NCBI GenBank assembly: GCA_946965045.2
Contig: OX337240.1
Span: forward strand, 744,001 to 808,000
Origin: Epithemia pelagica
Taxonomy: Eukaryota > Protista > Bacillariophyta
Length of the DNA stretch: 64,000 nt
Direction: 5' to 3'
Shown piece after piece: positions 17,549 to 60,006 of this stretch; position 1 is the stretch's first letter; the number at the start of each line of letters is the position of its first letter. The position numbers and the translations under genes were made by a program. The notes under the pieces are model-generated. The model saw only the letters and a program-made list of their open reading frames with translations. It had not been told where the DNA came from and did no database searches.

Positions 17549-17786
17549 TGCGAGTATAGCTAGGGTAGCAAGCTTATACTCGGCAACAAGACTCATCAAT
17601 CACGAATGATGAGCGACGTAAATGTGAACGAGTGGATGGAATGACTCATCCAAAAGATATTGAAGAAAAGATCCAAGTGAATTTAGTGAGAATTTAGGAC
17701 TAACATAATAGTGATTATCAGAATAAGTATCCTTTTTACGGATTGTTCAATGGGAAAGAGACCGCCGTTCTTTTCCACTACTCGCA
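17549..17786 (+). repeat. 5' LTR of copia A
   Basis: TGCGAGTA...TACTCGCA termini; matches the 3' LTR. Confidence 0.95.
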
Positions 17787-19631: not shown

Positions 19632-20108
19632 TGGGGTGGCCACTGGGTGGCGTCTTTGGACGGTCCATCTGGTGTAGGCCGCCCCTATCATCGCTATGGT
19701 CCCAGGAGGGAAACCTGGGTGACCTCTATCTTCTCATCCTTACTCGACTGTGCGCTCATGAGGGGGATGGGAGACCTATTTTGGCTTTCTCTACCGTGGT
19801 TATTCCTACTGTATCTCGCCTTGTTCATAGGCCTTTGTTGTGCCATGAGCTTGGTCGAGCAAGACTCCAAGTCCGGAGCCACAGCTGCTCATGCTGTGAG
19901 CACTCCACCAAGACCGCCGAAACCTCGTTTGAGACAGTCGGTACGCTCCTATGACCTCAAAATGAAAGCAAGACGTCGAGTCCATCGTGTGATCTGGCGC
20001 AACAACCGTCCTTGTCTTTGGTACAACACGGACGACTGGGATAACTGGACCAACCCGAGAATGTCGTCTCCAGAGGGAGCGACAAACGACACGACGAAGA
20101 TTCTTTGA
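19632..20108 (+). CDS. In-frame spacer ORF between gag and pol of copia A, with a hydrophobic segment
   Basis: Same frame as gag and pol, bounded by two TGA codons; contains LFWLSLPWLFLLYLALFIGLCCAM. Confidence 0.45.
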   Translation, partial: WGGHWVASLDGPSGVGRPYHRYGPRRETWVTSIFSSLLDCALMRGMGDLFWLSLPWLFLLYLALFIGLCCAMSLVEQDSKSGATAAHAVSTPPRPPKPRLRQSVRSYDLKMKARRRVHRVIWRNNRPCLWYNTDDWDNWTNPRMSSPEGATNDTTKIL

Positions 20109-23100: not shown

Positions 23101-24452
23101 CGACTGTGCGCCTGATGATGATTCTTTCCATCATTTTGAATCTGTCCACGGTACAAGTGGATTACACGGCAGCATTTGTACATGCGCCGATTGACAAGGA
23201 TCCCAATTGGGATAAGATGACAGAAGCAGAACAAAAGAAAAGTGGCGTGTATGTTGAGATGCCGAGAGGGTTTGCGCAACCAGGGAAAGTCTTGAAACTT
23301 ACACGATCGTTGTATGGCCTAAAGCAGGCGCCACGCAACTTCTTCCTTCATCTGAAAAGCAAATTGGAACAAGTCGGACTCAAGTCGCAGGAACACATCG
23401 ATCCGTGCCTGTTTATGTCCGACAAAATCATCGTGCTGGTCTATGTGGACGACACATTGATTTACAGCCCCAAACGCGAGTGGATTGATGAGTTTCTTGG
23501 GAAACTCCAGAATCAACAAAACGTGACACTCGAGATCGAAGACAGTGTAGCCGGATTTCTCGGCGTACACATTGAACGCAACGATAGTGATGGTACTATC
23601 ACGTTGACGCAGAAGGGCCTTATCAAGCGAATTGTAGAGGCTCTCCAACTTGGAGACAAACCCATGAAAAGGACACCAGCATCGAAGGATCCTCTGGTGG
23701 CAAACAAAAATGGGACTCCAGCACAGTGCAAATTCAGCTATCCAAGCGTTATTGGAATGCTGCAATACTTGCAAGCACATTCAAGACCCGACATCACATA
23801 TGCCGTCAGTCAATGTGCACGATACACCCATGATCCTAAGACAACACACGAAGAAGCGTTAGAGAGGATTGGGCAATATCTGAAAGGAACAATGGAGAAA
23901 GGGCTCATTCTCCGTCCAACTTACGACAATCTCAACGTTGATTGTTACGTTGATGCAGACTTCGCGGGTCTGTGGCCACATGAGGATAAGATGGATCCGT
24001 CATGTGTCAAGAGCCGAACTGGGTTTGCCATCTGCATCGCAAACTGTCCAGTTATTTGGCAAAGCAAGTTGCAATCGGATATTGCAACATCAACAATGGA
24101 GGCGGAATACACAGCGCTCAGTGTGGCGATGAAATCTGTGTTGCCTCTTTTGGATCTTTTGAAAACTGTGGCACGAGGTGTCGGCATGACAGAAGATCAG
24201 AGAACGAAATTCAAGACCACAGTGTGGGAAGATAACAATGGTGCCCTGACGCTCGCGAATATGGAGCCGGGCAGGTTTACACCAAGATCAAAGTTCTATG
24301 CGATACGAATGCACTGGTTTCGATCGCACTTAAAGCCAAATCGAGTCACGGTTGAAAAGATCGAGACATCGAAACAACGGGCAGACATCATGACAAAGGG
24401 TCTGACGAAAGATACATTTGAAACAATTCGGAAGCTACTGTGTGGATGGTAG
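20109..24452 (+). CDS. pol: Pol of copia A (protease, integrase, RT, RNase H)
   Basis: IVIDSGAS; WHWKLGH..C..C; SIDQ/ADN/AER integrase triad; KARFCARG, LYGLKQAP, YVDD; YVDADFAG, WEDN, ADIMTK. Confidence 0.95.
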   Translation, partial: DQIFGGLSLWSLALKDDSLIPQVDPVRQWQTIKLLSHGAWLGADLTRRKTPWKLMLRQSMVAAANFGQLKSFQAVTVPLDQVDCSGLNSETIGELSRRMTVYMSQREQDMLPIVIDSGASKSLTPNLQDFVGPIQPAEISSLNGLSGTTAVRGFGTVQWMVRDVMGVARTIKTKAYYVPEASIRLFSPQTFFQEQQAGKLVLDHKKTQLQIPDGTWLEFPYNSSSNLPFMLTGNVNHMGLTFEDATMLGDGYSVKSALSTANHSGLMNVADETNQNLTASQKELLLWHWKLGHANMQWIQTLCRDPKANSRRLVLETKEAKTTSCVIPLCAACMLGKQHRRTPHSNHGGLVDGKDSMLKREHLQPGDCVSIDQYESTIRGRLPHTYGKERTEEQYRGGTLFVDHASGMIFLANQVSLRVGETISSKKKFERFADEYGVKIREYRADNAPFGREEFLNHVHGNGQRISFSGVGAHHQNGVAERAVKTTMSWARTMLLHATIHWPEQMHLHLWPFAVEHAVWLWNHLPNRRTNIAPLEIFSGITFSDFHHLQRSHVWGCPVYVLDPKLQDGKKLPKWQAKARRGQFLGISPDHSTTVGRILNLRSGFISSQYHVVYDDLFSTVPNADSGGLLDEPNLNGDFWQRLLAAGTESNLPDEDDDDGTLELGDEWMTDSEIAERHARRQSRPPRPLPTPPLPIVPVPPSVDGGRGRATRNHVRFQPPLEQPTERGQEPEPPAEPGELPSQDQTGGLLPPEGASNGELLPPEGEADEAEHEIVFEDDSDDDSTTRQEEIERRNRHFAEPDPESHGRGKRERRPNRHLFDERLWASTAYFPRGSTRPKQKVRRELLNAQFLQSLTWDTLTSAIASKSKDLLAMDLWLDRHTDPDTRWIEEMHPMALATKADAADNPSWEQAMNGPDKDGYWEACKKEYNTLHEKMKAWEVVARETWMNVLPGTWAFKCKRYPDGSVRKLKARFCARGDKQVEGVDFFDTFAPVVNWTTVRLMMILSIILNLSTVQVDYTAAFVHAPIDKDPNWDKMTEAEQKKSGVYVEMPRGFAQPGKVLKLTRSLYGLKQAPRNFFLHLKSKLEQVGLKSQEHIDPCLFMSDKIIVLVYVDDTLIYSPKREWIDEFLGKLQNQQNVTLEIEDSVAGFLGVHIERNDSDGTITLTQKGLIKRIVEALQLGDKPMKRTPASKDPLVANKNGTPAQCKFSYPSVIGMLQYLQAHSRPDITYAVSQCARYTHDPKTTHEEALERIGQYLKGTMEKGLILRPTYDNLNVDCYVDADFAGLWPHEDKMDPSCVKSRTGFAICIANCPVIWQSKLQSDIATSTMEAEYTALSVAMKSVLPLLDLLKTVARGVGMTEDQRTKFKTTVWEDNNGALTLANMEPGRFTPRSKFYAIRMHWFRSHLKPNRVTVEKIETSKQRADIMTKGLTKDTFETIRKLLCGW

Positions 24453-24477: not shown

Positions 24478-25059
24478 TGCGAGTATAGCTAGGGTAGCAA
24501 GCTTATACTCGGCAACAAGACTCATCAATCACGAATGATGAGCGACGTAAATAAGACTGTTTCCATTGTGGGCAGGGATATTTCAGAGGGGTCCCAATTT
24601 GAGTTCGTTACATAGATCAACTCGTCTTTGAATGCTCTTTCGATTGGTTCAATATATGCCTCGCCAAATTAAGATATACACTTTGAAATATTGGACTAAA
24701 GTATGGCCGGAAAAATTTTAGTACTCAAAACCCTAATGTGAGATGTGCTAGAAGGTACGTAAAAACGGTACTGCAGTCGCGCACGTGAATGACAATAGGG
24801 GTATATAGCGCGCATACCGCGCAAAACTTTCAAGCTTGATTTCTCGAAAAGTGGATTTTTCAAATATCCCTGGTGACGATGGAATCAGTCTTAAATGTGA
24901 ACGAGTGGATGGAATGACTCATCCAAAAGATATTGAAGAAAAGATCCAAGTGAATTTAGTGAGAATTTAGGACTAACATAATAGTGATTATCAGAATAAG
25001 TATCCTTTTTACGGATTGTTCAATGGGAAAGAGACCGCCGTTCTTTTCCACTACTCGCA
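24478..25059 (+). repeat. 3' LTR of copia A, interrupted by a 340-bp insertion
   Basis: 238 + 340 + 4 = 582 bp; both halves match the 5' LTR exactly. Confidence 0.95.
24553..24892. mobile_element. MITE nested in the 3' LTR
   Basis: Imperfect TIRs of about 31 bp, AAGACTG(T/A)TTCCAT(T/C)GT...CAGGGATATTT, with a duplicated AAAT target (24549-52 and 24893-96); absent from the 5' LTR. Confidence 0.9.
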
Positions 25060-36044: not shown

Positions 36045-37715
36045 ATGCTTCGGAAGCAGAAAGCACCCTCGTTCAAGACGTTCCTGAGGAAACGAATAAT
36101 GCAACAGATCCAACAAATGCTATGGTGTGGTGGAAATTACTGGAGAAGAGGACCAAAGCTCCGTGGCCGCTTTTTTATGCCTTATAACGTCGTTGGCACT
36201 TGTTTTTCGTTGGTTCGAACACGAACCACAGCATCAACCGTAATACAGGGGAGTTGGAGTGAATCTAGACTACCAGTGTACAGGAGGCTTCAAGTAAATG
36301 TTGCTGGAAGAAATTTATGCAATTTCAGGACTAAACACAGATACACAGCGATTTCTATTCGCAGTTTTGCCTCCAGCGCTGCGACGTCAATACCGAACAG
36401 CAAGGACGAATCCTTGTTGGACCGTTACCAAAGGCTGGTGGGAGAAGGTCAGGTTCACCATGATACTCATCAAATGGAAGCCCTCGAGTTCTTGGAGCAC
36501 TTGCGTATGGAACTATTGGCTTACAATCTGCCTCCCCTCCCCAAGGAAACTTCGTCCACAAGTGGTGATGAAGGATCCTTCTCGAGTTGGTTTGGTTTTG
36601 GGGGTTCTAACACGAGTGGGGCCAACCAAAGTGTAATGAAAACAGCAATGAACTGGAAAAGTACTGTTCCAAGAGGGGTCTATTTGCATGGAGGAGTGGG
36701 TTCTGGCAAGACCATGCTCATGAATCTATTTTATGATTCTTTGACAGAAGAACCGTGGGCTTCGGAAAAGCAAAAGATTCACTATCACAAATTCATGGCC
36801 ACAATTCACAAGGAAATGCACCGAGCACGGAACAACCAGAGTGGCCAACACGTGAGTGACGCTGTCTTGCCAGCCGTGATTGCCGAAACGGCGCGCAATG
36901 GCCGTTTGATTTGTTTGGATGAGTTTCAAGTCACAGATGTGGCTGACGCCTTGATTTTACAACGACTCTTTACAGGGTTGTGGAAAGACCAAGGATGTAT
37001 TGTCGTGGCAACTTCGAATCGTGCACCGTGCGATTTGTATTTTGGTGGGCTGCAACGGGATCGATTTCTACCCTTTATTGACTTGTTGCAGGAATCTTGT
37101 CACGAAGTGAGTTTGTGGGATTCGGCAGTAGATTATCGATTGATTCAAAAGGTGGAATCGGGAGAAATGGCCAGTCTGTGGTTTGTGGGAACTCAGGGAG
37201 AAGCCGAGTTGGATCATCTGTTTCGACAAGAACTGGTTGGACCGGTCAATACGACGCGTTCATTGGACTTGCCCGTATCCAGCGAAAGCCAACGTACCAT
37301 TCCTGTTCCTCAAGCGAATCAAGCTCGAAGAATTGCTCGTTTTTCCTTTGCGGACATTTGCCAAACAGCCATGGGTGCGTCGGATTACCTAGTGATTGGG
37401 GAGCACTTTTCCACAGTCGTTGTGGACCAAATTCCGACCTTGACCTTGAATGAATTGAATTGGGTCCGTCGTTTCATCCTGCTGGTGGATGCCCTGTATG
37501 AATCCAACGTGAAGCTCATTCTACACTGTCACGAGGCGACACAGGCATCCGACATTTTTGTCGTACAGGATCGAGAATCGGTGGTTGCCAATCACGACGA
37601 GGTCTTTGCATTTGACCGCACCGTCTCGCGATTACAAGAAATGTCCAGCCGAACCTATCTACATCGCAAATGGACTGGACGAACGAGGACAAAGCACAGT
37701 GAAATGGATCAATGA
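36045..37715 (+). CDS. AFG1: AFG1/LACE1/ZapE-family ATPase
   Basis: GVYLHGGVGSGKT, ICLDEFQVTDVADA, VATSNRAP..LY.GGLQR, RRFILLVDALYE, FAFDRTVSRLQEM. Confidence 0.92.
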   Translation: MLRKQKAPSFKTFLRKRIMQQIQQMLWCGGNYWRRGPKLRGRFFMPYNVVGTCFSLVRTRTTASTVIQGSWSESRLPVYRRLQVNVAGRNLCNFRTKHRYTAISIRSFASSAATSIPNSKDESLLDRYQRLVGEGQVHHDTHQMEALEFLEHLRMELLAYNLPPLPKETSSTSGDEGSFSSWFGFGGSNTSGANQSVMKTAMNWKSTVPRGVYLHGGVGSGKTMLMNLFYDSLTEEPWASEKQKIHYHKFMATIHKEMHRARNNQSGQHVSDAVLPAVIAETARNGRLICLDEFQVTDVADALILQRLFTGLWKDQGCIVVATSNRAPCDLYFGGLQRDRFLPFIDLLQESCHEVSLWDSAVDYRLIQKVESGEMASLWFVGTQGEAELDHLFRQELVGPVNTTRSLDLPVSSESQRTIPVPQANQARRIARFSFADICQTAMGASDYLVIGEHFSTVVVDQIPTLTLNELNWVRRFILLVDALYESNVKLILHCHEATQASDIFVVQDRESVVANHDEVFAFDRTVSRLQEMSSRTYLHRKWTGRTRTKHSEMDQ

Positions 37716-43126: not shown

Positions 43127-44743
43127 CTACTTTACGTGTTCCCAATTGTGGACCATGATTTTGGAAACACACTGAAGCGCATGACGTTGGAGTTCAGGGT
43201 TTTCGTGCTCGATTAGGGCCATGACCAATTCCTTGGCACCCAATCGTTTCGCAATAGCACGGCCATTTGGATAATGACGCACGAATTCTCCAATATCGTA
43301 ACAAGCAATGGCCGCCACTTCTTCATCACGGCTACTGCCCAACAAGGTGATCAAAACCTTGACCAAATGGAAATCTCCATCCGTACCTTCCATCATACGA
43401 GCATTCTCTTTGAAAAAGGCTTCGGTGTGAGTGGAACCCCATTGCAAATGGCCGGATTCTACTTCATTCTTGTAGACCTCCCAACGGCTCATCTCCTTGT
43501 AGTTCTCCTGCAAGAGTTTATGCAGTGTGTTGACATCTTCGACGAGATCAGGGTCTGTAAATTGTCGATCGCGCAAGTGGTCAATGGCCTTCATAAGACC
43601 ACAGGCAATCATTTCTGACAAAAAGGTTTTGCCAGTGATAGGAGGACCCGCAGGTGTGTTTCCACTTCCCGGAAGAGGCTCGTTGTCTTCGGGAACGCAA
43701 GTGGCAAGGTTGCGCAAACAGGAAAGGGCAACTCGGACCACCTTTTCTCTCGGTGCCACCGAAACCAAGTCTACCAAAGCGGACACAGCAAGCGTATCCT
43801 TGGAAAAGTCGGAACGGATCGCAGCGGATCGGTTCAATTCGTAGGTGAGGATCCACATGCAAAATGTGATTTCGTACAACTGTTGAACGGACGCTTGACC
43901 CATCTTCTTCTTGTCGGCCGTGGCAAGATTCTTTGCCTTTGAACCAACTCGGAGTTGGCGAGACATGTACTTGATGCCTCCGGATTTGCAAAACAAATTT
44001 CGCGTTTCAGGAGCATCCATAAGGATTTTGAGTGCAGGAGTGCAAATCGCAACAAGTGTTCCGGAAGCATTCTTTAGCTGAGAGACAATCCAAGCAGTAA
44101 TGGCTTCCAAAGGTTCAATCGCTGACGCGTACTGAATAGGACGAGAAGGTTTTCCGTCAATGCTTTGCAAGGCGGCGCGCTGGCTAGGACAAGCTGTGAC
44201 AAGGATCTTTGTAAGACAAAGGGCTGCAACCTTTTGAGCAAAAATGTCTCCCTTCCCACCCTTGTTAAGACAACGCAACAAAGCTTTCCATTGATCCACC
44301 AGAACGCCCTCTTTTCCAACGTAAAAGACACTGGCAATCGTAACACCCTTTACACCACCTTGAAGAGTGGCCAGAATTTCCAAGAGTTTGGTCAAGGAAT
44401 AGTGAGCAACAATGCCCAAGGGATCCGTTTCCAAAAGTTTGAGAGCGTCCTCTTTGGTCATTGCTACCGCACCATCAGAAGTTATTTTGGAGACTTCTCC
44501 AGCCCCTGCTCCAGCAGTATTGGCTTCTGCTAGCAACTTCAACAGCACTCGCGCATACATTGAGGCATCACGGCTATCGGCCAACGTGTAATCCATTGGA
44601 TTGGTCTCCGCCATGCGAAGCAGCGCTGTCTCTTGCGCCGTCAGCTTCAGCGTCGACAACGAGTCCCACTGAATCTGAGCAAAAGCATCCGCTACCGGTG
44701 ACTTGATACCCAAGTCGGATAACTTGGATAGGGAACTCGTCAT
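43127..44743 (-). CDS. ATP6V1H: V-type proton ATPase subunit H
   Basis: C-terminal SGHLQWGSTHTE.FFKENA, IACYDIGEFVRHYPNG, AKELVMAL..HEN..LQRHALQCVSKIM. Confidence 0.9.
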   Translation of the reverse strand: MTSSLSKLSDLGIKSPVADAFAQIQWDSLSTLKLTAQETALLRMAETNPMDYTLADSRDASMYARVLLKLLAEANTAGAGAGEVSKITSDGAVAMTKEDALKLLETDPLGIVAHYSLTKLLEILATLQGGVKGVTIASVFYVGKEGVLVDQWKALLRCLNKGGKGDIFAQKVAALCLTKILVTACPSQRAALQSIDGKPSRPIQYASAIEPLEAITAWIVSQLKNASGTLVAICTPALKILMDAPETRNLFCKSGGIKYMSRQLRVGSKAKNLATADKKKMGQASVQQLYEITFCMWILTYELNRSAAIRSDFSKDTLAVSALVDLVSVAPREKVVRVALSCLRNLATCVPEDNEPLPGSGNTPAGPPITGKTFLSEMIACGLMKAIDHLRDRQFTDPDLVEDVNTLHKLLQENYKEMSRWEVYKNEVESGHLQWGSTHTEAFFKENARMMEGTDGDFHLVKVLITLLGSSRDEEVAAIACYDIGEFVRHYPNGRAIAKRLGAKELVMALIEHENPELQRHALQCVSKIMVHNWEHVK

Positions 44744-47867: not shown

Positions 47868-50800
47868 CTAGTCTTCGACGACTCGTCCGTAGAACTTGAC
47901 AGATTCACGGATTTTACCACGACATTCAGGACACTTGTAACGAAGTTTCTTCAGGGTCTTGGATGTTGCACAGGTTTGACAAAGACATGGATGCCCACAT
48001 GGTACGAGGATATGCGAAACAGGATTTTCCCAACAAATGACACACATCTTTGTGTTCGCCGAACTCTCGCTCGGGGAAGAGGAAGCTTGTTTACTCGCTG
48101 GTGACTTTTCCCGAACTAGCAGAGAATCCATTTCCTTGACTAACGTGTTCGCTTCATCGGAGACACGTCCACTACGTGCTACCTGCCCTCCCGCTGGTCG
48201 ACGAGAGGAAGCATGGGTTGGTGTCCTTTGTACCGTCCTTGACGCTCTTGGAGAGTCAAGAAGTGGGGACGTGTGCTGACTTGATGCCAGTGAAGATTGA
48301 GGAATCCTCGCTCGATGTCGTGTATTTCTAATGGTGTGTTCGTGACCTCCCATGTTACTTCTATTGGATCCACTTCTGTTCGATTCTGTTGCAGATTGCT
48401 GTTCAACGTTCGGGACTCTCCTCTGCTCAAACTGCACATTTGATGAATATTGTTGTTGATGCACTCTTTGAGACTGTCTGCGTCCAGCAACCGCGACATC
48501 TGTTGCGGCTGAATCGTCCGTGTTTGAATTTAAGGACGATTGCCTGTTGACCGCAGGGACTCTTCTGGTCGGTCGTTCTCGTATAGTATTCACCGGAGAA
48601 CCGGCTGGGCTTGAAAGAACACGCGTGTGGTGGTGCTGGCGACGGTAATTTGAATTACGAGAACGCCGTGGTCTAGTTCCGTAGGCACCACCTGGAAAAT
48701 AATTGGTCGTAGGCACAGTCCCCCCTGGGCTTTGACCGGGTTGCCTTCTTGCTCTCACAATACGGCGAGATGATGAGCTCAGGACTCGATAGGTAATCAC
48801 GTACTCGGGAAAAGATTGAGACGGTCTGCGAATGGAATAAATTTTGCTTTGGTTGGCCCCCCGTTTGCACGTGGAATGATAGTGAAGTTCATGAGGTGGT
48901 ACATCGGGTTCATTAATTTCCCTCTCGTCAACCCTTCCCAATGCCACCCTGGACAACACAAGCTGACGAATTTCACCCCCATTGTTTGGCATAAGGTACG
49001 CATTCTGGTGACTTGACGCCGAACTCTCAACCAGGAAAAAGCCTTGAGTAGTTGAGAAAAGCTCGTCGTATTTGCTGATGGAATAAACCAAGTCAGGTAT
49101 TGGAGACTCTGTCAGAGTGCCAAGGAATAGACGCTTTTCGTTGACAATTCCCCAGTTTTGTTCTGCCACTCGCTCACGTTGAGAGGCATATCGCTTCCAC
49201 ATTGCCGCTGATTGAACCCTCTTGATCGATTCGACTCTACACGCCATTGTATCCATGCCGCCCACGATGGAGTGGAACGGTTTCAGAACTAACTCTCGTT
49301 CGTTCGTGTCCACAACCTCAACCAAAACACCATTGTTCATTTCCCAAGAATCAGGTGGAGGAATTGGTTTTCGAGGTGGAACTCCTCGTGCCAAATGCAC
49401 AGGTGCGTTAGGTATTCCAACAGGTATAGGGGGAATGACACGTTTCACTTTGGGTGCCACAAAAACCATGTTGTTGTTTCTTTCATGCACCCCGACAACG
49501 ACAAAACAACCGTAGATGGTTTGTCCCAATGAGAGATTCGTATTGGCATCTCCCTTAAGGACGATACCATTGGCCATTCTTGTTTCACTTCCAGCGACCG
49601 ATTCCGGGCCAACCCTAAGCTCATACTTATTTCTGGCACCAATTCGACAGCAGATTGCTTTAGGCACTTCTAAAACTGACATTGGTGGGAATGCAACATC
49701 AGTGTATCCTCCGTCTGGATCAAGCCTGACAACAACGCCAATGCTCCCATTTTCTGGTTGGTAGGAATCGGTTTCAGTTGGAGTCCAATCCGGTCCACTT
49801 TGTACAAACATTCCGAGCTGTACATTGTCGATTGTCACTGGAGCACCAGGCAAGGCGGTCTTTGCGGCCACCACTGTATCCGCTAGCAAAGGACTGCGTG
49901 GATCTTCTTGGAGTGGTTTTTCAATCTGAGAGGGTGCCCACCGTTCGGTGGGCATGGGATCCAGCAATAACTTGACAAGGTTTCGAAGAGCATCCGAGTA
50001 TCCGACAATATGTCGTTGGCTGTTTCCATCAGTACCATTATTCCTGTTTGGTTGCGGAAGCCATGGTAGTCGCAGACACGGTAAGTCGAGAGCGGCATTC
50101 ACCGATTGTCTCTCATTGATATACTCTGCCAACGTTTGTTCGTCCGTCAGATCCACAAGCTTTTTACAGCAAAGCATTTCATACATGATACAGCCAAGAC
50201 CAAAGGCATCAATTTTCTCCACATCCAAACCGGAGTAGTCACTTCGTGCATGGGCGGCTTGAAGTTCCGGAGAGGCGTAAATCTCGGAAAACCCAACACT
50301 TTCTTCTCCAGGCGCCACAGCACTGCCAAAATCCGCAAGAAGGAGCTTGCCTCCGTCGGATCGATCAATGAGAACATTGGAGCTCTTGACGTCATGATGT
50401 GCCACACCTCTTTCATGCGCAAAGGCCAGTGCGGAACTAAGCTGAAGTGCATACCACGCAATTCTTCGTTCTGCATAGGGATCTTGATCTAGCTTGGACT
50501 CAATCTCTTGCGCCAATGTCCCCCCATCGGCATATTTCATGACAAAACAGCCAAATCCTGGACCAGTGAACCAATCTTCAAAGAATACAATAGACAGAGC
50601 TCGGTTCTCGTCACTGGATGAGGCATGGTCGTCATCTAATTGCGAAACCGAATCCAATTCCCTGTTGAATTTCTCTTCCTCCTCCTCCTCATCCCCATCC
50701 AATTCAAACCTCATAAACTTTAACGCTACGAGACGACCAGACCTCTTCTTGGCCAGAAACACACTTCCAAAAGCTCCATGTCCTAGGCATCGGACTTGTT

Positions 50801-50930
50801 GAAACTCCTGATCAATCTGTGCCAGTTGCGTATGTTCGGGGCTTTCTTCCAACTCTACGGAAGAGTCATTCTGGGGTGATCCTGCAGGAGATGTCCCTTC
50901 TTGTTGCCCAGACACTGCCCTTGTCGCCAT
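47868..50930 (-). CDS. Multidomain protein: kinase + MIB/HERC2-like + PARP-catalytic-like + disordered linker + RING (C3HC4)
   Basis: LGHGAFGSV/VALK/HHDVKSSN/DFG/SPE; GMFVQSGPDW..G..G.V..CRIG..NKYEL; IKRVQ...W.RY...NEKRLFLGT..RVALG..Q.FPEYVITY; CVICW..PCGH.C.C..C...CPECR. Confidence 0.8.
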   Translation of the reverse strand: MATRAVSGQQEGTSPAGSPQNDSSVELEESPEHTQLAQIDQEFQQVRCLGHGAFGSVFLAKKRSGRLVALKFMRFELDGDEEEEEEKFNRELDSVSQLDDDHASSSDENRALSIVFFEDWFTGPGFGCFVMKYADGGTLAQEIESKLDQDPYAERRIAWYALQLSSALAFAHERGVAHHDVKSSNVLIDRSDGGKLLLADFGSAVAPGEESVGFSEIYASPELQAAHARSDYSGLDVEKIDAFGLGCIMYEMLCCKKLVDLTDEQTLAEYINERQSVNAALDLPCLRLPWLPQPNRNNGTDGNSQRHIVGYSDALRNLVKLLLDPMPTERWAPSQIEKPLQEDPRSPLLADTVVAAKTALPGAPVTIDNVQLGMFVQSGPDWTPTETDSYQPENGSIGVVVRLDPDGGYTDVAFPPMSVLEVPKAICCRIGARNKYELRVGPESVAGSETRMANGIVLKGDANTNLSLGQTIYGCFVVVGVHERNNNMVFVAPKVKRVIPPIPVGIPNAPVHLARGVPPRKPIPPPDSWEMNNGVLVEVVDTNERELVLKPFHSIVGGMDTMACRVESIKRVQSAAMWKRYASQRERVAEQNWGIVNEKRLFLGTLTESPIPDLVYSISKYDELFSTTQGFFLVESSASSHQNAYLMPNNGGEIRQLVLSRVALGRVDEREINEPDVPPHELHYHSTCKRGANQSKIYSIRRPSQSFPEYVITYRVLSSSSRRIVRARRQPGQSPGGTVPTTNYFPGGAYGTRPRRSRNSNYRRQHHHTRVLSSPAGSPVNTIRERPTRRVPAVNRQSSLNSNTDDSAATDVAVAGRRQSQRVHQQQYSSNVQFEQRRVPNVEQQSATESNRSGSNRSNMGGHEHTIRNTRHRARIPQSSLASSQHTSPLLDSPRASRTVQRTPTHASSRRPAGGQVARSGRVSDEANTLVKEMDSLLVREKSPASKQASSSPSESSANTKMCVICWENPVSHILVPCGHPCLCQTCATSKTLKKLRYKCPECRGKIRESVKFYGRVVED

Positions 50931-51517
50931 GGCCTTCGACAAACTCGTTTCTTCAAACTTTGCTGAAAATCTGTGCTCAACGGCAGAAGAAATCTTCCTC
51001 ACCCGTCTTTTCGAGTGAATGGAAAGAACTTCAACAGAAGTTAAAGGTTGATGGAATGGTTTATTGTAATCCTCTGGTATCGGTTTCTCGAGAGATTGTT
51101 TCGGTTCCTATAACCACGTCTCCAAACAAATCCCTCCACAACCAAGACCACAAACAACAAAGAAGAGCTTTCGGAGATTTGTTTGCAAAACTGACAACGG
51201 GGGAGGAGAAGGGCCATCTCTCCAGATTCCTCGCTTCTCTTTGTCTGTTCTGGCTTTCTTTGGATGTGACTGCGGTGATCCCCCCACGCGCGTGCAGGCA
51301 AGCCGGCATCTCTCGTGCGTTGAAACGGATGGAAAGCGCGCACCTACCGACTACATAATTCACAGCTTTTCTTTGAGATGCGCTGCCCCCCCTCTTTTTT
51401 GACACACCCCTGGATCAGAAACACGATTCGGAAAAAGGTGTTCCACCTTCCGTCCCATTTCATCATCTCTCTCTTGCTGTCAACATCTCTCTAGAGAATC
51501 ATATCATTTTGCACAAG

Positions 51518-52180: not shown

Positions 52181-52599
52181 AGGATGCTCTATGAAAAAAG
52201 ACTTTCAGGACGTTCCATCGTGTAGTTGAAGGTGCGGAGTGGTGTCCATTTCTTGGGAACAGAAACAACCTCAAGAGGAACATTTCATCGGAGCTTTCTT
52301 GGACGTTCATATCCATGTTAATACATTATTTCTTGTGGAAAAAGGAGCATCACTGTATTAGTCTTTGCACTCTATATTATATCCTTCCAGAACATAGGAA
52401 CATGATGAAGAAGACGATCCTTCGACTACACAAGTGAAAGGAGCTGGACTAAGATGGAAATTGGATGGAGCGATAGATAAGGTAGCTCCTCATTGGATCG
52501 TTGGTTTCGGTGGCTCGTTGGTCGCGTACTGGAGAGTACGTCACGTGTGGTCATCCATCTTCCCAACTTGCACTTTTTCGAAGGGATGCGTTGCGCGAG

Positions 52600-52839
52600 T
52601 GAATAAATAATCACGGGCGCCCCCTTTGTAACCTACGAAGGGCCTCGCCATGCCTCGCTACGTACCGCCTGGCATCGCCCGGCCCCTAACTATGTGTTCG
52701 CTAGTGGGTACCGTGGTCGCTATTTGGCCCCTACGTGAGCGATTTGCCCCCAAAGGGCACCCCTAGTTTAGTTATCATAATTTCTGATAGTTTGATTGTT
52801 GCAAGCCGTATATTGCGTCTGGCTGTCAGTTTTTATTCA
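52600..52839 (+). repeat. 5' LTR of copia B
   Basis: 239/240 identical to 59767..60006. Confidence 0.95.
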
Positions 52840-53333: not shown

Positions 53334-55409
53334 ATGGCCGCAAATGCCTTCCGTACTGCACTGGGCCGCTGTGGCTACGATAATGCTACCGTTGGGTACC
53401 TAACGCAACAGGGCTTCACGACAACGGATCAGTTTCTGGAGTTTCCTATCAACGAAGTCAAGCCCATGCTGAAGACATTAGCCAAGAACCTACCTGACGG
53501 TGTCACCCTACCCTACCAATTCAACCTCAAGTTCCTTGGCTTCCGAATGTGGTTGGAATACCGTTCTGTCCGTGGTCAAGACCTTGATGCTGGTGCTTAT
53601 ACTGGTGACGTAATCACCAAGTGGATGAGACGCGTAACGGAACTCGCGAATGCCACCACCACTGATGGTCAGGATGACCCAGTACCACCCAAAAGGCTAA
53701 CGAACCTTGCCGATTGGGAACGTCACGACGGAATGTGGCGCACGTACTTGGGTCAGCACCGTAATCCGACGACGGGAGTGCCGCTCACCTACGTATTGCG
53801 TGAGGAGTCCGACGTACCGGACGACGCACTAACCGCCGATTACGACTGCATTGACGACGACCTAGTCGCGACCACTCGTCATGAGGGGGACCAGTACAAA
53901 GCCGACCGACGCAGAGTGTATGAGCTGTACTACCCTCTTATCTACGATGGTCCGGCGTGGACGTTTGCTAAAACGCACGCAAAATCGAAGGACGGCCGTG
54001 AGGCCTACCTAACCGTCAAGCGGCAAGCCACTGGACAGGCCGCGAGCATCCTGCGCAAGAAACAGGCTTATGCGCAGATCGCAAATGCTAAGTTTACAGG
54101 ACGAGGGAAGTACCGCTTCCATGACTACATTCACCGTCACCAACATGCGCACAACACCCTGGAAGAGCTTGGCGAAACGGTCGCGGAAACGAAAAAAGTG
54201 ACCGATTTCATGAATGGGATCACCGATCCGACGCTCGTCCAAGCAAAGACCGTCGTCAACGGTGACCAGGAGAAGTTGGAGAACTTTGAAGCGTGCCAGC
54301 AATACTTCTTGACTGTGCACAGTGCCGCCAAAACCGAAACGCAGGACGACTCTCGCAAGATCGCTGCTGCTAGTACCACCCCAAGCAAAGGAAAGGGCAA
54401 AGGGCGCAATCAGAAAAAGAGCAAGAAAAAGAAGGACCGCGTTCATGCTGGTCACTACGATGCCGACGAATGGGCAGACCTGACGGAGGACGAACGCAAA
54501 CAAGTCCAGGCTCTTCGCAAAGAGCGCAAAGAAAAGCGGAAGCTTGGATCCGTCACCACAGACGACTCTTCCAACGCATCGTCGAAGAGGTCGAAAACGT
54601 CGCATGGGAGTACTGCTGAGGACGCAATCTCAGTAGACATTGATAACGACGCTAAGCCTGAGGCTAAGACCAACGTATCGGTCATCATGGAAGTAGACGA
54701 GAACTTGCTTGACTCCTCTGTTGACAACGTACCGTCGCCAGACAAGCACTCCAAGTTCCGCGCTTCCGCCTCACCTGCAAAATCATCCGAAGATGATTCG
54801 CAGCCGACAAAGTCCTCAGCTGGCAACAGCTTTGGACGTTTCGCGCATAAGGCTAAAGCACAACCGAACGAACCCGGATCTGCGTCCGTCAAATCCGTAC
54901 GTACTCGCCCCATGGGGGAATACGAGACCTATCCACCGAAGTGGCAATGGGAAGAGGACGGACGTCCTGATATGAGTCATATGACCATCCCACCAGTCCC
55001 GGAACACGGTGACATCTTTGTAAAGCTGCCGCTACCGGTCAAAGGCAAGTTTGCTGAAGGGCCTCGCAACGTCCGCTCACTTACCAAGCATGACCAAAGT
55101 ATGCTGAAAGGAAGCTTCCGCGAAGAGATCGACACTATTGTACACAATAGTCCAGTTTGGTCTTGGCGCTGGTCTAAAATGTCAGGCTATGAACGAGAAG
55201 AGCGCCAAATGTACCATGTGTGCAGACGCTTAGCCGAGCACACGGAAGTGTTCGACGAAGCTTTGAAATACACTATGCTTGCCAATGGACAATTGGCTGC
55301 CGCAGAGCGAAGGCGCAATGTATGCGGTCGTTATTCCGCCGATCTTGAATTCGATGTCCGTGACCCGAATGTCTCTGACAAGTCTGCCGACAAGTCTAAT
55401 TCCTCCTGA
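53334..55409 (+). CDS. gag: Gag of copia B with C-terminal extension
   Basis: 691-aa ORF after the LTR/UTR; capsid-like region and Y...EW..L...E....V..LR motif; no CCHC knuckle. Confidence 0.85.
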   Translation: MAANAFRTALGRCGYDNATVGYLTQQGFTTTDQFLEFPINEVKPMLKTLAKNLPDGVTLPYQFNLKFLGFRMWLEYRSVRGQDLDAGAYTGDVITKWMRRVTELANATTTDGQDDPVPPKRLTNLADWERHDGMWRTYLGQHRNPTTGVPLTYVLREESDVPDDALTADYDCIDDDLVATTRHEGDQYKADRRRVYELYYPLIYDGPAWTFAKTHAKSKDGREAYLTVKRQATGQAASILRKKQAYAQIANAKFTGRGKYRFHDYIHRHQHAHNTLEELGETVAETKKVTDFMNGITDPTLVQAKTVVNGDQEKLENFEACQQYFLTVHSAAKTETQDDSRKIAAASTTPSKGKGKGRNQKKSKKKKDRVHAGHYDADEWADLTEDERKQVQALRKERKEKRKLGSVTTDDSSNASSKRSKTSHGSTAEDAISVDIDNDAKPEAKTNVSVIMEVDENLLDSSVDNVPSPDKHSKFRASASPAKSSEDDSQPTKSSAGNSFGRFAHKAKAQPNEPGSASVKSVRTRPMGEYETYPPKWQWEEDGRPDMSHMTIPPVPEHGDIFVKLPLPVKGKFAEGPRNVRSLTKHDQSMLKGSFREEIDTIVHNSPVWSWRWSKMSGYEREERQMYHVCRRLAEHTEVFDEALKYTMLANGQLAAAERRRNVCGRYSADLEFDVRDPNVSDKSADKSNSS

Positions 55410-58400
55410 TGGAGTGTGCCCTGTGCATCCGCTGCCGAAGCAGTAAAAATTGATAAAACGAATCTTATTGTTCATTCGAATGCACACGTAGGCACCCATT
55501 ATAGTTATTCGAAACGTTTCGCACATCGTCTATGTGCTATGAACACCGACGAATATGGTGTTGAGACCATTGAGCTCACCTGTGAGTTGGACTCACATGC
55601 GGACACCTGTGCCGTGGGAAGAGACTTCGTAATGCTCTCCGAAGCCCACCGCTATATCAGTGTGCATCCGTTCGCGGAAGAATATAACCCGCTGACCAAT
55701 GTCCCTATTGCGACTGTTGCTACTGTCTGGACTGACAGCGAAAACCAGTCTTACTTGCTTGTCATTCACCAAGCATTGTTTTTAGGAGACCGTATGGGCA
55801 GTTCGTTACTCTGTCCGAACCAGATGCGTGCCCATGGCATCGTTGTCAACGACGTACCTAAACAGTTTGACCCGCACAGCACGCATAGTATCCACGTACC
55901 GGATGCCGATCTCACTATCCCGCTCACCATGGCTGGTGTGATAAGTGGTTTCGCCACTCGCAAACCCACTTCTGACGAGCTGGAACACTTGCCACAAGTT
56001 GTGCTAACTGCCGATAGCCCATGGCAACCTCGTTCTACCGCCTTTGCGGACGCGGAGGAGAAACTGGGTGTAGCTGCCGCTACTGTCGTTCGCAATGGCG
56101 ATCCGAATTCGATTGCCGCATCCTCCATTCCACGACTCATCAAAGCAGTGCGAACGTACCAGCATGCTTTTGCCAATCCATCACCCGATCTGGACGCCGA
56201 CGCACAAGGCGACGACCTATACGAACGCTTGATAGCGACGGTCACTGTTCATCCAGAGAAGGAGGAGCCTGATGTAGTCCCGGAGGACAAACGTGAACGT
56301 CGGCTGTACATGATCAAGACTGCTAACGAGTCTTCCCCAGCCGATCCTGCTGGAAAGGGAGTGCTTGACGCAGCTGTACTGTCACAACGTTGGGGCATTG
56401 GTTTACCCAAAGCAAAGAATACGCTTAAAGTGACGACGCAGGCTGGAGTACGAAACGTATTAATCCCATCTGAGCGTAAGGTCCGTAAGAAGGCACCGTG
56501 GCTCAAATTCCCCAATGTGAAAGGCCGTTGGTTCTCGGACGAGATGTTTGCCAAGGAAGTTTCACTGAACGGGGACACGGGCGCCTCGATCTTTACAGAC
56601 GGCAAAGGATTCGACCACGTTTATCCCTGGAAGTCGAAAAAGCAACATCCTGAAGGATTGATGTCTTTGATTCACAATGTAGGGATTCCCCAAACAATGG
56701 TATCTGATGGTGCCCGAGAATTGTTCCTGGGGAAGTCCCGTGAAATATGCAACGAGTACCGCATAAAGATGGAGAAAACGGTTCCTTATAGTCCATGGCA
56801 GAACGCCGCCGAAGCGAGCATTCGTGAACTAAAGAAGGGAGTTGTCAAGATTATGAGGACGACCGGCGCACCACGACGCTTATGGAGCTATGCTCTTAAA
56901 TGGTGCTCACACGTACGGCAACTCACGGCATCCGATATCCCTGAATTAGATGGACGTACACCGTTCGAGCATGTAATTGGCTCAACGCCAGACATCTCTC
57001 CATTAGCCATGTTCCAATTCTATCAGCCGGTGTATTATCGCATGCCCATGGCACAGTTTCCCTTCGAAAAAAGACTGATTGGCCGATGGTTGGGTTTAGC
57101 CGATGATTGCACCGATGATATGGCCTATGAAATCCTAACGCAAGAGGGCAATCATGTCACACGGAAAGATGTGTGGGCCATTCCGGAAGACGACCTGAAG
57201 AATCCGACGATTCATCAGCAGTTGTTGGACTATGATGTCGCTATTCAAACGCAAATGAAAGAGCCGCCATCTGATGGCACAACTGGGAGCGATCCACCCC
57301 CAGACCTCTTTGACGAAGGTGAACTTCTAGAGCCCTTGTTCCCAGAGGCCGAATCCCTGGAATCCGACGCGTACACGCCGGAGGAACTAGACGAATATCT
57401 CACCGCTGAAGTCATGCTGCCGCGAGGAGGTGAAAGCGCTCGAGCGAAAATCATTGGACGCACGAAAGATGCTCATGGGCGACCTATTGGTGAGCGCGAC
57501 GCAAACCCAATCCTTGATACCCGGTACTACGATGTACAGTTTCCGGATGGATCGGTCGAGTCGTATGCAACCAATATGATCGCAGAGAATCTGTATTCGC
57601 AAGTTGACCCGGAGGGCAATGCGTTCAACACATTGAAAGCCATTGTGGGTCACCGCAGTGATGAGACCGCAGTTAAGCGAACAGACGCATCGTTCCTTGA
57701 CGGCACATCACACCACACAACGAAAGGCTGGGAATTACAATGTGAACTGTCCGATCAATCGACTGTTTGGCTGCCGCTCAAAGACGTCAAGAATGGAAAT
57801 ATGATTGAAGCCGCCGAATATGCAGTATCCACTGGCATCGCAAAAGAGCCTGCTTTCGCATGGTGGGTGCCACGTGCACTTCGCAAACGAGACCGCATTA
57901 TCAAAAAGGTAAAGTCACGTTATTGGAAGCGAACGCACAAGTATGGCATTGAGTTGCCCCACTCTGTGGAAGAAGCCCTGACGATTGACCGCCGAACGGG
58001 GACTGATTTCTGGCGTAAGGCTATTGAGAAAGAAATGAAGAACGTTGGCATTGCTTTCGAATTTCCAGCTGATGGCGAAGTGCCTTCTGGATACAAGCAT
58101 ATTCCCTGTCATATGGTTTTTGACATCAAATCAGACCTGCGACGAAAAGCACGGTTAGTGGCCGGAGGCCACAAAACTGATCCACCCAAAGAATCGACCT
58201 ATTCTAGTGTGGTATCACGCGATAGCGTACGCATTGCTTTTACTATCGCTGCACTAAATGGTCTAGATGTTCTCGTCGGGGACGTGCAAAACGCATATCT
58301 CAACGCACCGACTAAAGAGAAGACCTATACCACCGCGGGACTCGAATTTGGACCAGATAAGGTTGGACAACCTGCACTGATAGTGCGCGCATTATATGGT

Positions 58401-59645
58401 CTCAAAAGTTCTGCCGCAAGGTGGCGTGATCACATCGCCGCAACGCTCCGCGACATGGGATTTAAGATGTGTCAAGCTGATCCAGATGTATGGATTCGAG
58501 CGAACACTCGACCATCTGATGGGTTCCAGTATTACGAGTATGTTTTGGTCTATATTGATGATCTGCTGATTGTAAGTCATGATCCCAAAACCGTGATGCA
58601 GGACCTGCAGAGGCGCTATACAATCAAGCCCGACAGTATCAAACCACCAGACGAATACTTGGGATCCGAAATACGGCGTTATACCATACCCGACACGCAA
58701 GATCCGTCGAACCGTGATCGTTGGGCCATGTCCGCTGATAAGTATTGTAAGCGTGCTCTTGCCGAAGTCGAAACGGAACTGGAGAAATCCGGAGAAAAGC
58801 TGAAGTCAAAAGTGACGACGCCGATCGCCGATGGATATCGCCCGGAATTGGATGCGACTCCTGAACTCGACGCAAGACGTGCGAACTATTACCAAGGACT
58901 GATCGGTATCCTCCGTTGGATTGTTGAACTCGGTCGTATCGACATTACAACCGCAGTCTCCCATATGTCCCGTTTTATGGCGAATCCACGAGAAGGACAT
59001 CTCGAGCAAACGTTGCACATCTTCGCGTATCTGAAGAAGTACGATAAATCCGCCATTGTGTTCGACGACACAACCCCTGACTTCGACGAGTCACGTTTTA
59101 CTAGACCGGATTGGTCTGAGTATTATCCTGATGCTGCCGAGCCGATTCCGCCAAACGCACCAGCACCGCGTGGAAACGCTGTCACCACGACTTGCTTTGT
59201 CGATGCTGATCATGCTGGATGTCGTGTCACACGGCGCTCTCAAACAGGAGTCCTACTGTTCATGCAACGAGCACCGATCATGTGGTATTCAAAACGACAA
59301 AACACTGTTGAGACGTCTACATTTGGCAGTGAGTTCGTGGCGATGAAAACTGCCATTGAAATGATTGAAGCATTTCGTTATAAGTTGCGAATGATGGGTA
59401 TCCCGTTGGATGGAGAGACGAATGTGTTTTGCGACAATGAATCTGTGTTTAAGAACTCGACGCAGCCGGAATCAGTCCTAAAGAAGAAGCACAACGCAAT
59501 TGCTTATCATCGGACTCGTGAAGCGCAAGCTGCTGGACTTGTGCGCATTGCATGGGAAGAGGGTGAAACGAATCTTGCCGATATCCTGACCAAACTGCTA
59601 CCCGGACCTCGATTGCGATTCTTGGCCCAACGTATCATGTGGTAG
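55410..59645 (+). CDS. pol: Pol of copia B (protease, integrase, chromo-like module, RT, RNase H), in frame with gag
   Basis: ELDSHADT; FSD/VSDG/AE integrase; KARLVAGG, ALYGLKSS, YIDD; FVDADHAG, FCDN, ADILTK. Confidence 0.95.
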   Translation, partial: WSVPCASAAEAVKIDKTNLIVHSNAHVGTHYSYSKRFAHRLCAMNTDEYGVETIELTCELDSHADTCAVGRDFVMLSEAHRYISVHPFAEEYNPLTNVPIATVATVWTDSENQSYLLVIHQALFLGDRMGSSLLCPNQMRAHGIVVNDVPKQFDPHSTHSIHVPDADLTIPLTMAGVISGFATRKPTSDELEHLPQVVLTADSPWQPRSTAFADAEEKLGVAAATVVRNGDPNSIAASSIPRLIKAVRTYQHAFANPSPDLDADAQGDDLYERLIATVTVHPEKEEPDVVPEDKRERRLYMIKTANESSPADPAGKGVLDAAVLSQRWGIGLPKAKNTLKVTTQAGVRNVLIPSERKVRKKAPWLKFPNVKGRWFSDEMFAKEVSLNGDTGASIFTDGKGFDHVYPWKSKKQHPEGLMSLIHNVGIPQTMVSDGARELFLGKSREICNEYRIKMEKTVPYSPWQNAAEASIRELKKGVVKIMRTTGAPRRLWSYALKWCSHVRQLTASDIPELDGRTPFEHVIGSTPDISPLAMFQFYQPVYYRMPMAQFPFEKRLIGRWLGLADDCTDDMAYEILTQEGNHVTRKDVWAIPEDDLKNPTIHQQLLDYDVAIQTQMKEPPSDGTTGSDPPPDLFDEGELLEPLFPEAESLESDAYTPEELDEYLTAEVMLPRGGESARAKIIGRTKDAHGRPIGERDANPILDTRYYDVQFPDGSVESYATNMIAENLYSQVDPEGNAFNTLKAIVGHRSDETAVKRTDASFLDGTSHHTTKGWELQCELSDQSTVWLPLKDVKNGNMIEAAEYAVSTGIAKEPAFAWWVPRALRKRDRIIKKVKSRYWKRTHKYGIELPHSVEEALTIDRRTGTDFWRKAIEKEMKNVGIAFEFPADGEVPSGYKHIPCHMVFDIKSDLRRKARLVAGGHKTDPPKESTYSSVVSRDSVRIAFTIAALNGLDVLVGDVQNAYLNAPTKEKTYTTAGLEFGPDKVGQPALIVRALYGLKSSAARWRDHIAATLRDMGFKMCQADPDVWIRANTRPSDGFQYYEYVLVYIDDLLIVSHDPKTVMQDLQRRYTIKPDSIKPPDEYLGSEIRRYTIPDTQDPSNRDRWAMSADKYCKRALAEVETELEKSGEKLKSKVTTPIADGYRPELDATPELDARRANYYQGLIGILRWIVELGRIDITTAVSHMSRFMANPREGHLEQTLHIFAYLKKYDKSAIVFDDTTPDFDESRFTRPDWSEYYPDAAEPIPPNAPAPRGNAVTTTCFVDADHAGCRVTRRSQTGVLLFMQRAPIMWYSKRQNTVETSTFGSEFVAMKTAIEMIEAFRYKLRMMGIPLDGETNVFCDNESVFKNSTQPESVLKKKHNAIAYHRTREAQAAGLVRIAWEEGETNLADILTKLLPGPRLRFLAQRIMW

Positions 59646-59766
59646 CACCCCTTTTAGATCCAAAATGGGATCGCCCCTTTTGAAGAATAGTCCGACGTAC
59701 TGGACCGGCCTCTGCTGACATGACGAACTAAACGAAGTTGCCCACCCCGATTTTGTTCGCGGGGAC

Positions 59767-60006
59767 TGAATAAATAATCACGGGCGCCCCCTTTGTAACC
59801 TACGAAGGGCCTCGCCATGCCTCGCTACGTACCGCCTGGCATCGCCCGGCCCCTAACTATGTGTTCGCTAGTGGGTACCGTGGTCGCTATTTGGCCCCTA
59901 CGTGAGCGATTTGCCCCCAAAGGGCACCCCTAGTTTAGTTATCATAATTTCTGATAGTTTGATTGTTGCAAGCCGTATATTGCGTCTGGCCGTCAGTTTT
60001 TATTCA
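59767..60006 (+). repeat. 3' LTR of copia B
   Basis: Follows the PPT; matches the 5' LTR. Confidence 0.95.

Follow-up and report, generated by a model that had tools for sequence, protein, structure and literature searches.

How does a retrotransposon obtain its Pol protein when gag ends in a stop codon and pol continues behind it in the same frame? This question is raised by two elements, copia A and copia B, in a 64,000-nt stretch of the genome of the diatom Epithemia pelagica (GenBank assembly GCA_946965045.2, contig OX337240.1, positions 744,001 to 808,000 of the forward strand; hereafter the window, in whose numbering all positions are given). The open reading frames (ORFs) and their translations agree with the original observation: each element has its gag and pol in a single frame, split by a TGA. 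We propose that programmed UGA read-through, stimulated by an RNA stem that starts at position +10, six nucleotides past the stop, probably joins Gag to Pol in both families. The features on which this proposal turns are listed here, first for copia B and then for copia A.

53334-55406, + strand: copia B gag, 691 amino acids (aa) by ORF list and translation, without a Pfam match
55407-55409, + strand: UGA terminator of copia B gag, the proposed read-through site, conserved in copies and relatives
55410-55415, + strand: copia B spacer UGGAGU, 6 nt between stop and stem; first paired base at +10 in constrained folds
55416-55495, + strand: copia B 3′ structured domain, a predicted stem of 55416-55428 with 55480-55495 around small hairpins that include 55431-55444
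55410-59645, + strand: copia B pol frame, 1411 codons in the frame of gag, encoding protease (PR), integrase (IN), reverse transcriptase (RT) and RNase H (RH), by translation and an RVT_2 match
55590-55607, + strand: copia B protease active-site motif DSHADT, starting at codon 61 past the stop; the motif is present in 8 lineage-B relatives
17889-19628, + strand: copia A gag, 580 aa with a CCHC zinc knuckle, by translation and a Pfam zinc-knuckle match
19629-19631, + strand: UGA terminator of copia A gag, the proposed read-through site, kept in copies and in intact lineage-A relatives
19632-19637, + strand: copia A spacer UGGGGU, six bases, from folds
19638-19680, + strand: copia A candidate read-through stem-loop, with a GGCC base, a 13-bp upper helix, a 3-nt GUA bulge on the 3′ side and a closing GGCC, from folds and a covariance model
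19632-24452, + strand: copia A pol frame, in the frame of gag, 1606 codons in intact copies, by translation and by 1606-aa open frames at other copies

Both elements belong to Ty1/copia by their long terminal repeats (LTRs) on both sides and their RVT_2 (Pfam) matches, and the order PR-IN-RT-RH was read off the translations. Copia A also matches Pol_BBD, gag_pre-integrs and SH3_retrovirus. Copies were sought throughout the genome (60.5 Mb, 23 contigs). Junctions of relatives were taken from other diatom assemblies and metagenomes, using contigs that encode Gag homologs (12 look-ups) and one metagenome scan with the Gag-A alignment; we counted as lineages those whose sequence extends past gag, which gave 20 across two Gag lineages. 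Homologs of the copia B Gag come from Epithemia clementina, Fragilaria crotonensis and metagenomes (35-45% identity), and the copia A Gag has 34 homologs (27-54% identity), many of them ending in ...LVNQFS. Further copia families of the Epithemia genome are known from pattern matches and model matches alone.

The gag terminator is UGA in 20 of 20 junction lineages. Loss of the motif from other family members had been named as a finding that would speak against read-through; in the genome, however, 30/30 copies of B and 17/17 copies of A, an 88% relative included, retain the TGA together with its surroundings. UGA also stands at all 10 lineage-B junctions examined (the window family, a 74% relative in the same genome and eight loci from elsewhere) and in all intact lineage-A relatives. 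Pattern matches add a third family with 18 copies and a fourth with about 30, for a total of about 100 genomic copies. The pol frames, by comparison, end in a mix of TAG, TAA and TGA, and among the host ORFs in the window TAG is the prevailing terminator, with TGA in some; since TGA does terminate host ORFs, nothing suggests an altered host genetic code.

Past the stop, frame 0 stays open for hundreds of codons and up to 1418 in intact copies, whereas frames +1 and +2 are usually closed within 20. The peptide behind the lineage-B stop is conserved, as W[SH]VPC, GCVPS or RFAPA followed by (I)DKTNLI, with synonymous differences, and 52-62 codons past the stop the protease motif DSHADT stands unchanged in 8 lineage-B relatives, 7 of which have the longer form ELDSHADT. 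Variable sites among the B copies fall on codon positions 1, 2 and 3 in the numbers 22/17/48 upstream of the stop and 22/18/45 downstream, favoring the third position on both sides. Within-family diversity, at 2.5-2.8%, is too low to reveal any additional conservation of the motif. The fixed UGA and the open frame 0 make programmed read-through common to both families, as originally suggested, the best reading of these junctions.

Several observations on these proteins stand apart from that reading. The D-S-H-A-D-T active-site motif of the lineage-B protease (window 55590-55607 and the 8 relatives) takes the place of the D-S/T-G-A usual in retropepsins. Four lineage-A metagenome loci (L087:3073, L088:2825, L095:1455 and L096:1455, from Ga0075154 / Ga0075156 / Ga0209277) carry an in-frame TGA inside a conserved Gag motif, right before GGPLFF, at a site that is Gln in L090; these may be broken copies, or may derive from a host with a different genetic code. 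An AlphaFold model of the first 180 residues past the B stop, intended to show whether the protease fold depends on residues upstream of the first Met, had a mean pLDDT of 41.5 and was not used.

The junctions are also marked by structure. When the first 8 nt are held open in folding, 16 of the 20 junctions have their first base pair at +9 to +11; in single-sequence folds of lineage A this pair falls at +10 in 8 of 11 independent junctions and at +9 in two more. Stems of at least 8 bp that start at +9 to +11 and reach -10 kcal/mol or lower occur at 12/20 junctions compared to 14% of 760 control positions (p = 2.5e-6), the control being a crude one made of codons inside the same pol frames.

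In lineage A the stem is a compact hairpin. Its base is GGCC, GGGC or GGUC, closed by GGCC, GCCC or GACC, and above the base lie an upper helix of 6-13 bp, entirely different in sequence between relatives, and a 3′-side bulge of 2-3 nt (GUA, AUA, AAA, GCA or AU). The copia A hairpin (19638-19680) folds at -21.2 kcal/mol, with a z-score of -4.8 for the 62-nt fold. A covariance model built from five seeds, R1, placed the unseeded members L083, L090, L087/88, L095/96 and L066 at their own junctions, and with filters off also L069, L074, L075 and L072. Across ten diverse lineage-A members, 99.1% of alignment cells form standard pairs, compared to 15-41% after the 3′ partners have been shifted by 1-3 columns. 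In the same ten members, 33 cells have changed on both sides (9.1 ± 2.7 in shuffles), 21 further pair types occur (14.1 in shuffles) and the covariation score is 0.881 (0.222 in shuffles); for each of these values, 0 of 500 shuffles reach the observed one. RNAalifold on a plain, structure-blind MAFFT alignment recovered the base helix, with CG, GC and UA at the third pair. Lineage A therefore has, at the 6-9 nt distance that characterizes stem-stimulated read-through, a stem-loop with compensatory substitutions.

Elsewhere in the genome, R1 reports 21 further sites at 31-37 bits, three of which sit 3.3 kb upstream of RVT_2 matches on the same strand. At gathering score Rfam had no match anywhere in the window, and at E <= 1 it had none in either element; a tRNA search of the window was likewise empty.

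In lineage B the stem starts at +9 to +14 in all members and spans a longer range, enclosing coding sequence in domains larger than the lineage-A hairpin. In one subgroup, B1 (copia B of the window, L060, L061 and L097), GUGCC at +10 has its pairing partner, GGCAC, 60-85 nt downstream; this base is invariant in the four, and the upper helices are unlike in sequence (UGUGCAU/AUGCACA, AGUGA/UCACU and GGGUAGUUU/AAACUAC-CC). In the other, B2, CCGGCUCUUG pairs with CAAGAG-G-CCGG. The copia B domain (55416-55495) folds at -22.2 kcal/mol, and the 94-nt fold has a z-score of -3.0. Within family B, 8 copies have C-G at 55426:55482, 17 have U-G and 5 have U-A. The two small hairpins first described behind this stop, 55411-55430 and 55431-55444 with its CGAA loop, both form in a 44-nt fold; in longer folds and in relatives, however, 55411-55430 gives way to the stem of 55416-55428 with 55480-55495. 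Hairpin 55431-55444 stays inside the B domain and is specific to the window B family.

What, then, of the linear sequence around the stop, from which the proposal of a shared signal started? A recount agrees that the contexts ATTCCTCC-TGA-TGGAGTG in B and ATTTCTCC-TGA-TGGGGTG in A are identical at 16 of 18 nt. The two elements are otherwise dissimilar, as had been stated for their LTRs and Gags: BLASTP detects no similarity between their Gags, nucleotide comparison finds no match between their LTRs or internal DNA, and their Pols share 24% identity, confined to RT/RNase H. Genome-wide, TCCTGATGGRGTG has 51 matches against 0 for a reversed control. Of these, 47 are copies of A or B; the other 4, about the number expected by chance, lie without open frames around them. 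A motif scan of IMG/VR gave 88 matches, again about chance, and in 0 of them are there open frames on both sides of the TGA.

Across the 20 lineages the immediate context varies. The codon before the stop is UCC in 3, and elsewhere GAA, GCU, GCC, ACC, GAU, AUC, CAU or GCA. Base +4 is C in 11, U in 6, A in 2 and G in 1, and the first codon past the stop, UGG in 4, is otherwise UGU, UGC, CUU, CUC, CUA, CGA, CGG, CAA, AAG, AAU or GGC. The six bases past the stop range over CUUCUU, CUACUU, CGAUUC, CGGGUC, CAACCU, GGCUGU and AAGUUA. Behind this variable spacer, +10 is G in 17/20 lineages and +13 is C in 20/20. Within the Epithemia genome, UGA-UGG-NGU-G recurs in five (sub)families, namely A, B, C-a, C-b and C-c, and each of the four bases occurs at N. 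The third family, whose hairpin is of the A type, has 18 copies that fall into three subfamilies, with the contexts UCU-UGA-UGG-UGU-GGCC, UCU-UGA-UGG-CGU-GGCC and CCG-UGA-UGG-UGU-GGCC. The codon right after the stop is also UGG in Epithemia's relative of B and in one lineage-A element that comes from a different sequencing run. We conclude that there are at least two types of spacer, interchangeable with each other, UGG-NGU being one and spacers that start with C the other. The window spacers UGGAGU and UGGGGU match none of the named leaky contexts (stop-CARYYA, UGA-CUA(G) and UGA-CGG); CUA, CGG or CAACCU occurs in some relatives. The UGA-UGG context is indeed unusual, as claimed, although it has a precedent in a furovirus, sorghum chlorotic spot virus (PMC3159437).

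These data bear on a reading in which the linear context UCC-UGA-UGG-RGU-G is itself a new, diatom-specific signal and the structures are secondary. In its favor, the 16/18 identity of A and B exceeds the next-best value of 12/18 among 99 cross-lineage junction pairs (mode 9), UGA-UGG-NGU-G is present in the five (sub)families, and UGG in 4 of 20 lineages exceeds the 1.8% of Trp codons in pol frames (p = 4e-4, uncorrected for relatedness). Yet relatives at 35-52% Gag identity retain the UGA and the stem with different spacers and preceding codons, and a sister family of B in the same genome, with about 30 copies, has UGA-GGC-UGU-GUGCC, with G at +4. The UCC of A follows from its Gag: UUC-UCC are the codons of the conserved Phe-Ser end of lineage-A Gags. 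In B, GUG-CC encodes a conserved Val-Pro (lineage-B Pol begins W-x-V-P-C) and at the same time builds the stem base. We consider it distinctly unlikely that the linear context is the signal, and the motif as first drawn does not survive: the preceding codon and the six following bases vary, and what is conserved is the stem-loop at +10.

The agreement between A and B is partly the base of the stem (GGCC compared to GUGCC) and partly lineage-specific coding, and it remains an outlier that these two do not account for. It could reflect a cassette inherited by both through shared descent, it could be convergent, or a short stretch could have been exchanged between RNAs packaged together. One version of the first idea, which we put forward tentatively and hold to be doubtful, is that UGA, the 6-nt spacer and a G-N-N-C stem base at +10 to +13 are one ancient homologous RNA element in deeply diverged diatom copia lineages, and that UGA-UGG-NGU is a true second class of read-through context, in which the UGA and UGG codons might both be read by tRNA-Trp. 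Equally speculative is its corollary that an R-U-A bulge precedes the 3′ strand of the stem base, as GUA-GGCC in A and GUA-GGCAC in B. Such an ancient cassette with a UGG-NGU class, if true, would account for the 16/18 identity between otherwise unalignable elements.

In the mechanism that we favor, Gag would be made by termination at UGA, and decoding of UGA by a near-cognate tRNA would yield a smaller amount of Gag-Pol. The stimulator would be the RNA stem-loop whose first pair lies 6 nt past the stop; with UGA in the ribosomal A site, the stem would sit at the mRNA entry channel and disfavor release-factor action. In lineage A the predicted stimulator is the compact hairpin, with a GSSC base, a helix of 6-13 bp of free sequence and a 2-3 nt 3′ bulge; in lineage B it is the longer-range stem, of type B1 in the window copy and of type B2 elsewhere. 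Stimulated near-cognate decoding is suggested because the geometry (UGA, six bases, a stable stem) is that of known structure-stimulated read-through. We infer ribosomal read-through itself, with whatever efficiency it would have and whatever amino acid it would insert, from the anatomy, conservation, frame continuity and covariation observed at these junctions.

Other routes to Pol have to be weighed against this one. Pol could be translated from a separate transcript or by internal initiation past the UGA, through a junction promoter or an ATG such as 55539-55541 in copia B. An in-frame ATG does lie 5-91 codons past the stop in every element, and a minor junction promoter is known in the Candida albicans element Tca2 (PMC2194720). 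The position of the first Met, however, is not conserved. In lineage B it lies 1-17 codons upstream of DSHADT in 6 of 8 relatives (17 codons in copia B) and downstream of it in L097, which does not leave room for a whole protease before the catalytic Asp; in L101 it lies 42 upstream. Because the protease motif lies 52-62 codons past the stop with the Met so near to it, initiation at ATG 55539, which had been raised as an alternative start for pol, is disfavored. Frame 0 is moreover open straight from the stop with a conserved peptide, and a covarying stem 6 nt past the stop would have no role; we regard internal initiation or a separate transcript as improbable. Removal of the stop from some transcripts by splicing or editing, fusing gag and pol, is very improbable. 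Drosophila copia and plant copia elements do set their Gag:Pol ratio by splicing (background in PMC2194720), but that splicing takes pol out of a single ORF to make a gag mRNA, which is unneeded here. There is no conserved GT...AG pair around the stop, and the sequence directly past it is coding and conserved in frame 0. Three sequencing runs, X1-X3, apparently DNA and with contigs up to 509 kb, show no change at TGA 55407-55409; X1 and X2 contigs span the junction with the TGA intact, and beyond this the contigs differ only by variants between copies and by a few joints of low depth whose anchors are short. Least credible of all is a different recoding event. UCC-UGA-U is the antizyme shift site, so a +1 frameshift could be imagined, but UCC precedes the stop in just 3/20 lineages, in B the +1 frame runs into a stop after 11 codons and in most relatives after 8-20, and pol is in frame 0. 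For selenocysteine, a stem 6 nt past UGA resembles the SEPN1 redefinition element (PMC3159437), but Rfam finds no SECIS, nor any other family, in either element at E <= 1.

Several points count against stem-stimulated read-through. The lineage-A covariation alignment was fitted to the structure of the model; the single-sequence folds and the RNAalifold check on the MAFFT alignment are free of this bias. In lineage B formal covariation is weak, RNAalifold giving invariant pairs only, because most paired columns never vary. The covariation that had been proposed as a test of the 3′ structure is thus strong in lineage A and weak in lineage B. L055, the 74% relative of B and a broken copy, has no significant fold (z 0.15). 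There is no clear third-position excess in the first 43 codons past the B stop, nor in much of the 158 past the A stop, and protein-level constraint there is therefore weak. The closest copia precedent, Tca2, also gives pause: it has a gag-UGA-pol arrangement with a predicted pseudoknot, yet its junction sequences did not drive read-through in Saccharomyces cerevisiae, and a minor internal promoter was found (Forbes et al., PMC2194720). The description of UGA read-through in Tca2 as known was accordingly an overstatement, the local sequences being insufficient in that yeast.

The proposed mechanism is of a known kind; the RNA element and the host group are new. In alphaviruses, stems 7-9 nt after UGA enhance read-through by as much as 10-fold or more (3- to 14-fold depending on virus and assay), and stems of this kind, supported by compensatory changes, have been predicted for furo-, tobra- and pecluviruses (Firth et al. 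2011, PMC3159437). The copia junctions share with these plant and animal viruses a UGA in frame, a spacer of a few nucleotides, a stem that is conserved phylogenetically and shows compensatory changes, and a loop that is short or about 100 nt long and may code for protein, as well as UGA-CGG or UGA-CUA in some relatives. They differ in residing in DNA-integrated LTR retrotransposons of a diatom host, in a spacer of 6 rather than 7-9 nt, in the compactness of the lineage-A hairpin (30-45 nt) with its 2-3 nt 3′ bulge above a GSSC base, and in having no sequence or Rfam similarity to the viral elements. The SEPN1 element also has a conserved stem-loop 6 nt after UGA and stimulates read-through even without a SECIS (PMC3159437); unlike copia A and B, in which no SECIS is found, it belongs to a cellular selenoprotein gene that has one.

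Among retroelements, the copia junctions resemble Tca2 in superfamily (Ty1/copia), in the UGA between in-frame gag and pol and in a predicted 3′ structure; they differ in that the structure here is backed by covariation across many lineages, whereas the local Tca2 signal failed in S. cerevisiae (PMC2194720). The diatom CoDi elements of Maumus et al. (2009, PMC2806351) share host group and superfamily, but no stop identity, context or RNA structure is described for them there, and we found no description of a diatom copia read-through signal in the literature searched.

Murine leukemia virus (MuLV) uses UAG, an 8-nt purine-rich spacer and a pseudoknot. It is likewise a retroelement with gag and pol in one frame around a single stop and a 3′ structure near the stop that sets the Gag:Gag-Pol ratio. 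The copia junctions differ in having UGA rather than UAG and a 6-nt spacer of unconserved sequence; the Rfam gag/pol read-through families gave no match at E <= 1, and no search for a pseudoknot was made here.

The remaining parts of the two elements are these.

52597-52839, + strand: copia B 5′ LTR, a direct repeat with 59764-60006, 99% identical
59764-60006, + strand: copia B 3′ LTR, a direct repeat with 52597-52839, 99% identical
17549-17786, + strand: copia A 5′ LTR, with two repeat blocks in common with 24478-25059
24478-25059, + strand: copia A 3′ LTR, with about 344 extra bases compared to the 5′ LTR and two blocks in common with 17549-17786
19701-19719, + strand: copia A second conserved hairpin, CCCAGG-AGGGAAA-CCUGGG, from 7 lineage-A members
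20106-20108, + strand: copia A second in-frame TGA, from an alignment of 14 copies

The blocks shared by the copia A LTRs are spaced at 6929 and 7273 nt, and the length difference, which maps to 24553-24891, reflects either sequence inserted into the 3′ LTR or sequence deleted from the 5′ LTR. The second TGA (20106-20108) is present in the window copy and one other (L042) and absent from the other 12 of 14 aligned copies. Since the shared LTR parts of the window copy are 100% identical despite this TGA, the data suggest a recent insertion of a defective copy, perhaps mobilized in trans. Between the copia A stop and the protease lie 158 codons (window 19632-20105; also L065, L068, L069 and L083) whose sequence is poorly conserved. 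The read-through part nevertheless always starts with a strongly hydrophobic stretch that resembles a membrane helix, LFLLYLALFIGLCCAM being an example.

The second hairpin lies 54-72 nt past the stop in its 7 members, which form a subclade, within a nearly invariant stretch of the family. In L074 and L075 (54-66 nt), CCCAGG/CCUGGG is replaced by CCUGGA/UCCAGG, three pairs changed on both sides with the loop kept as AGGGAWA, and the peptide differs across this exchange (PRRETW compared to PGRDIQ). The hairpin may be a part of the stimulator, or a packaging or dimerization signal. Pairing of its purine-rich loop with UUUCUCCU just before the stop was considered and dropped, as relatives do not conserve it.

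The host genes of the window lie at 7407-9257 (- strand), 36045-37715 (+ strand), 43127-44743 (- strand) and 47868-51002 (- strand) and encode an RF-1-domain protein, an AFG1-like ATPase, V-ATPase subunit H and a kinase with a RING finger; copia A and B interrupt none of these ORFs. Genome-wide there are at least 898 RVT_2 candidates, with frames of about 1420-1720 aa (pol only, with a stop before it) or about 2170-2925 aa (gag-pol fused). From these two length classes it follows that split and fused gag-pol architectures coexist in the genome.

The mechanism is one that specialists in recoding would expect, and it will not surprise them. The lineage-A hairpin, an RNA family with good support and no entry in Rfam, could be modeled and used to annotate intact elements and their true Gag-Pol products, which gene callers currently split into two genes. 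The natural series of spacers before one structure (UGG-NGU, CUN, CGN, CAA and GGC) is a ready-made test of context and structure in UGA read-through, and the cassette could become a tunable read-through device in diatom engineering. Copia elements are the main transposons of diatom genomes, and a cassette of about 50-100 nt now provides a concrete, testable signal for how they set their ratio of Gag to Gag-Pol.

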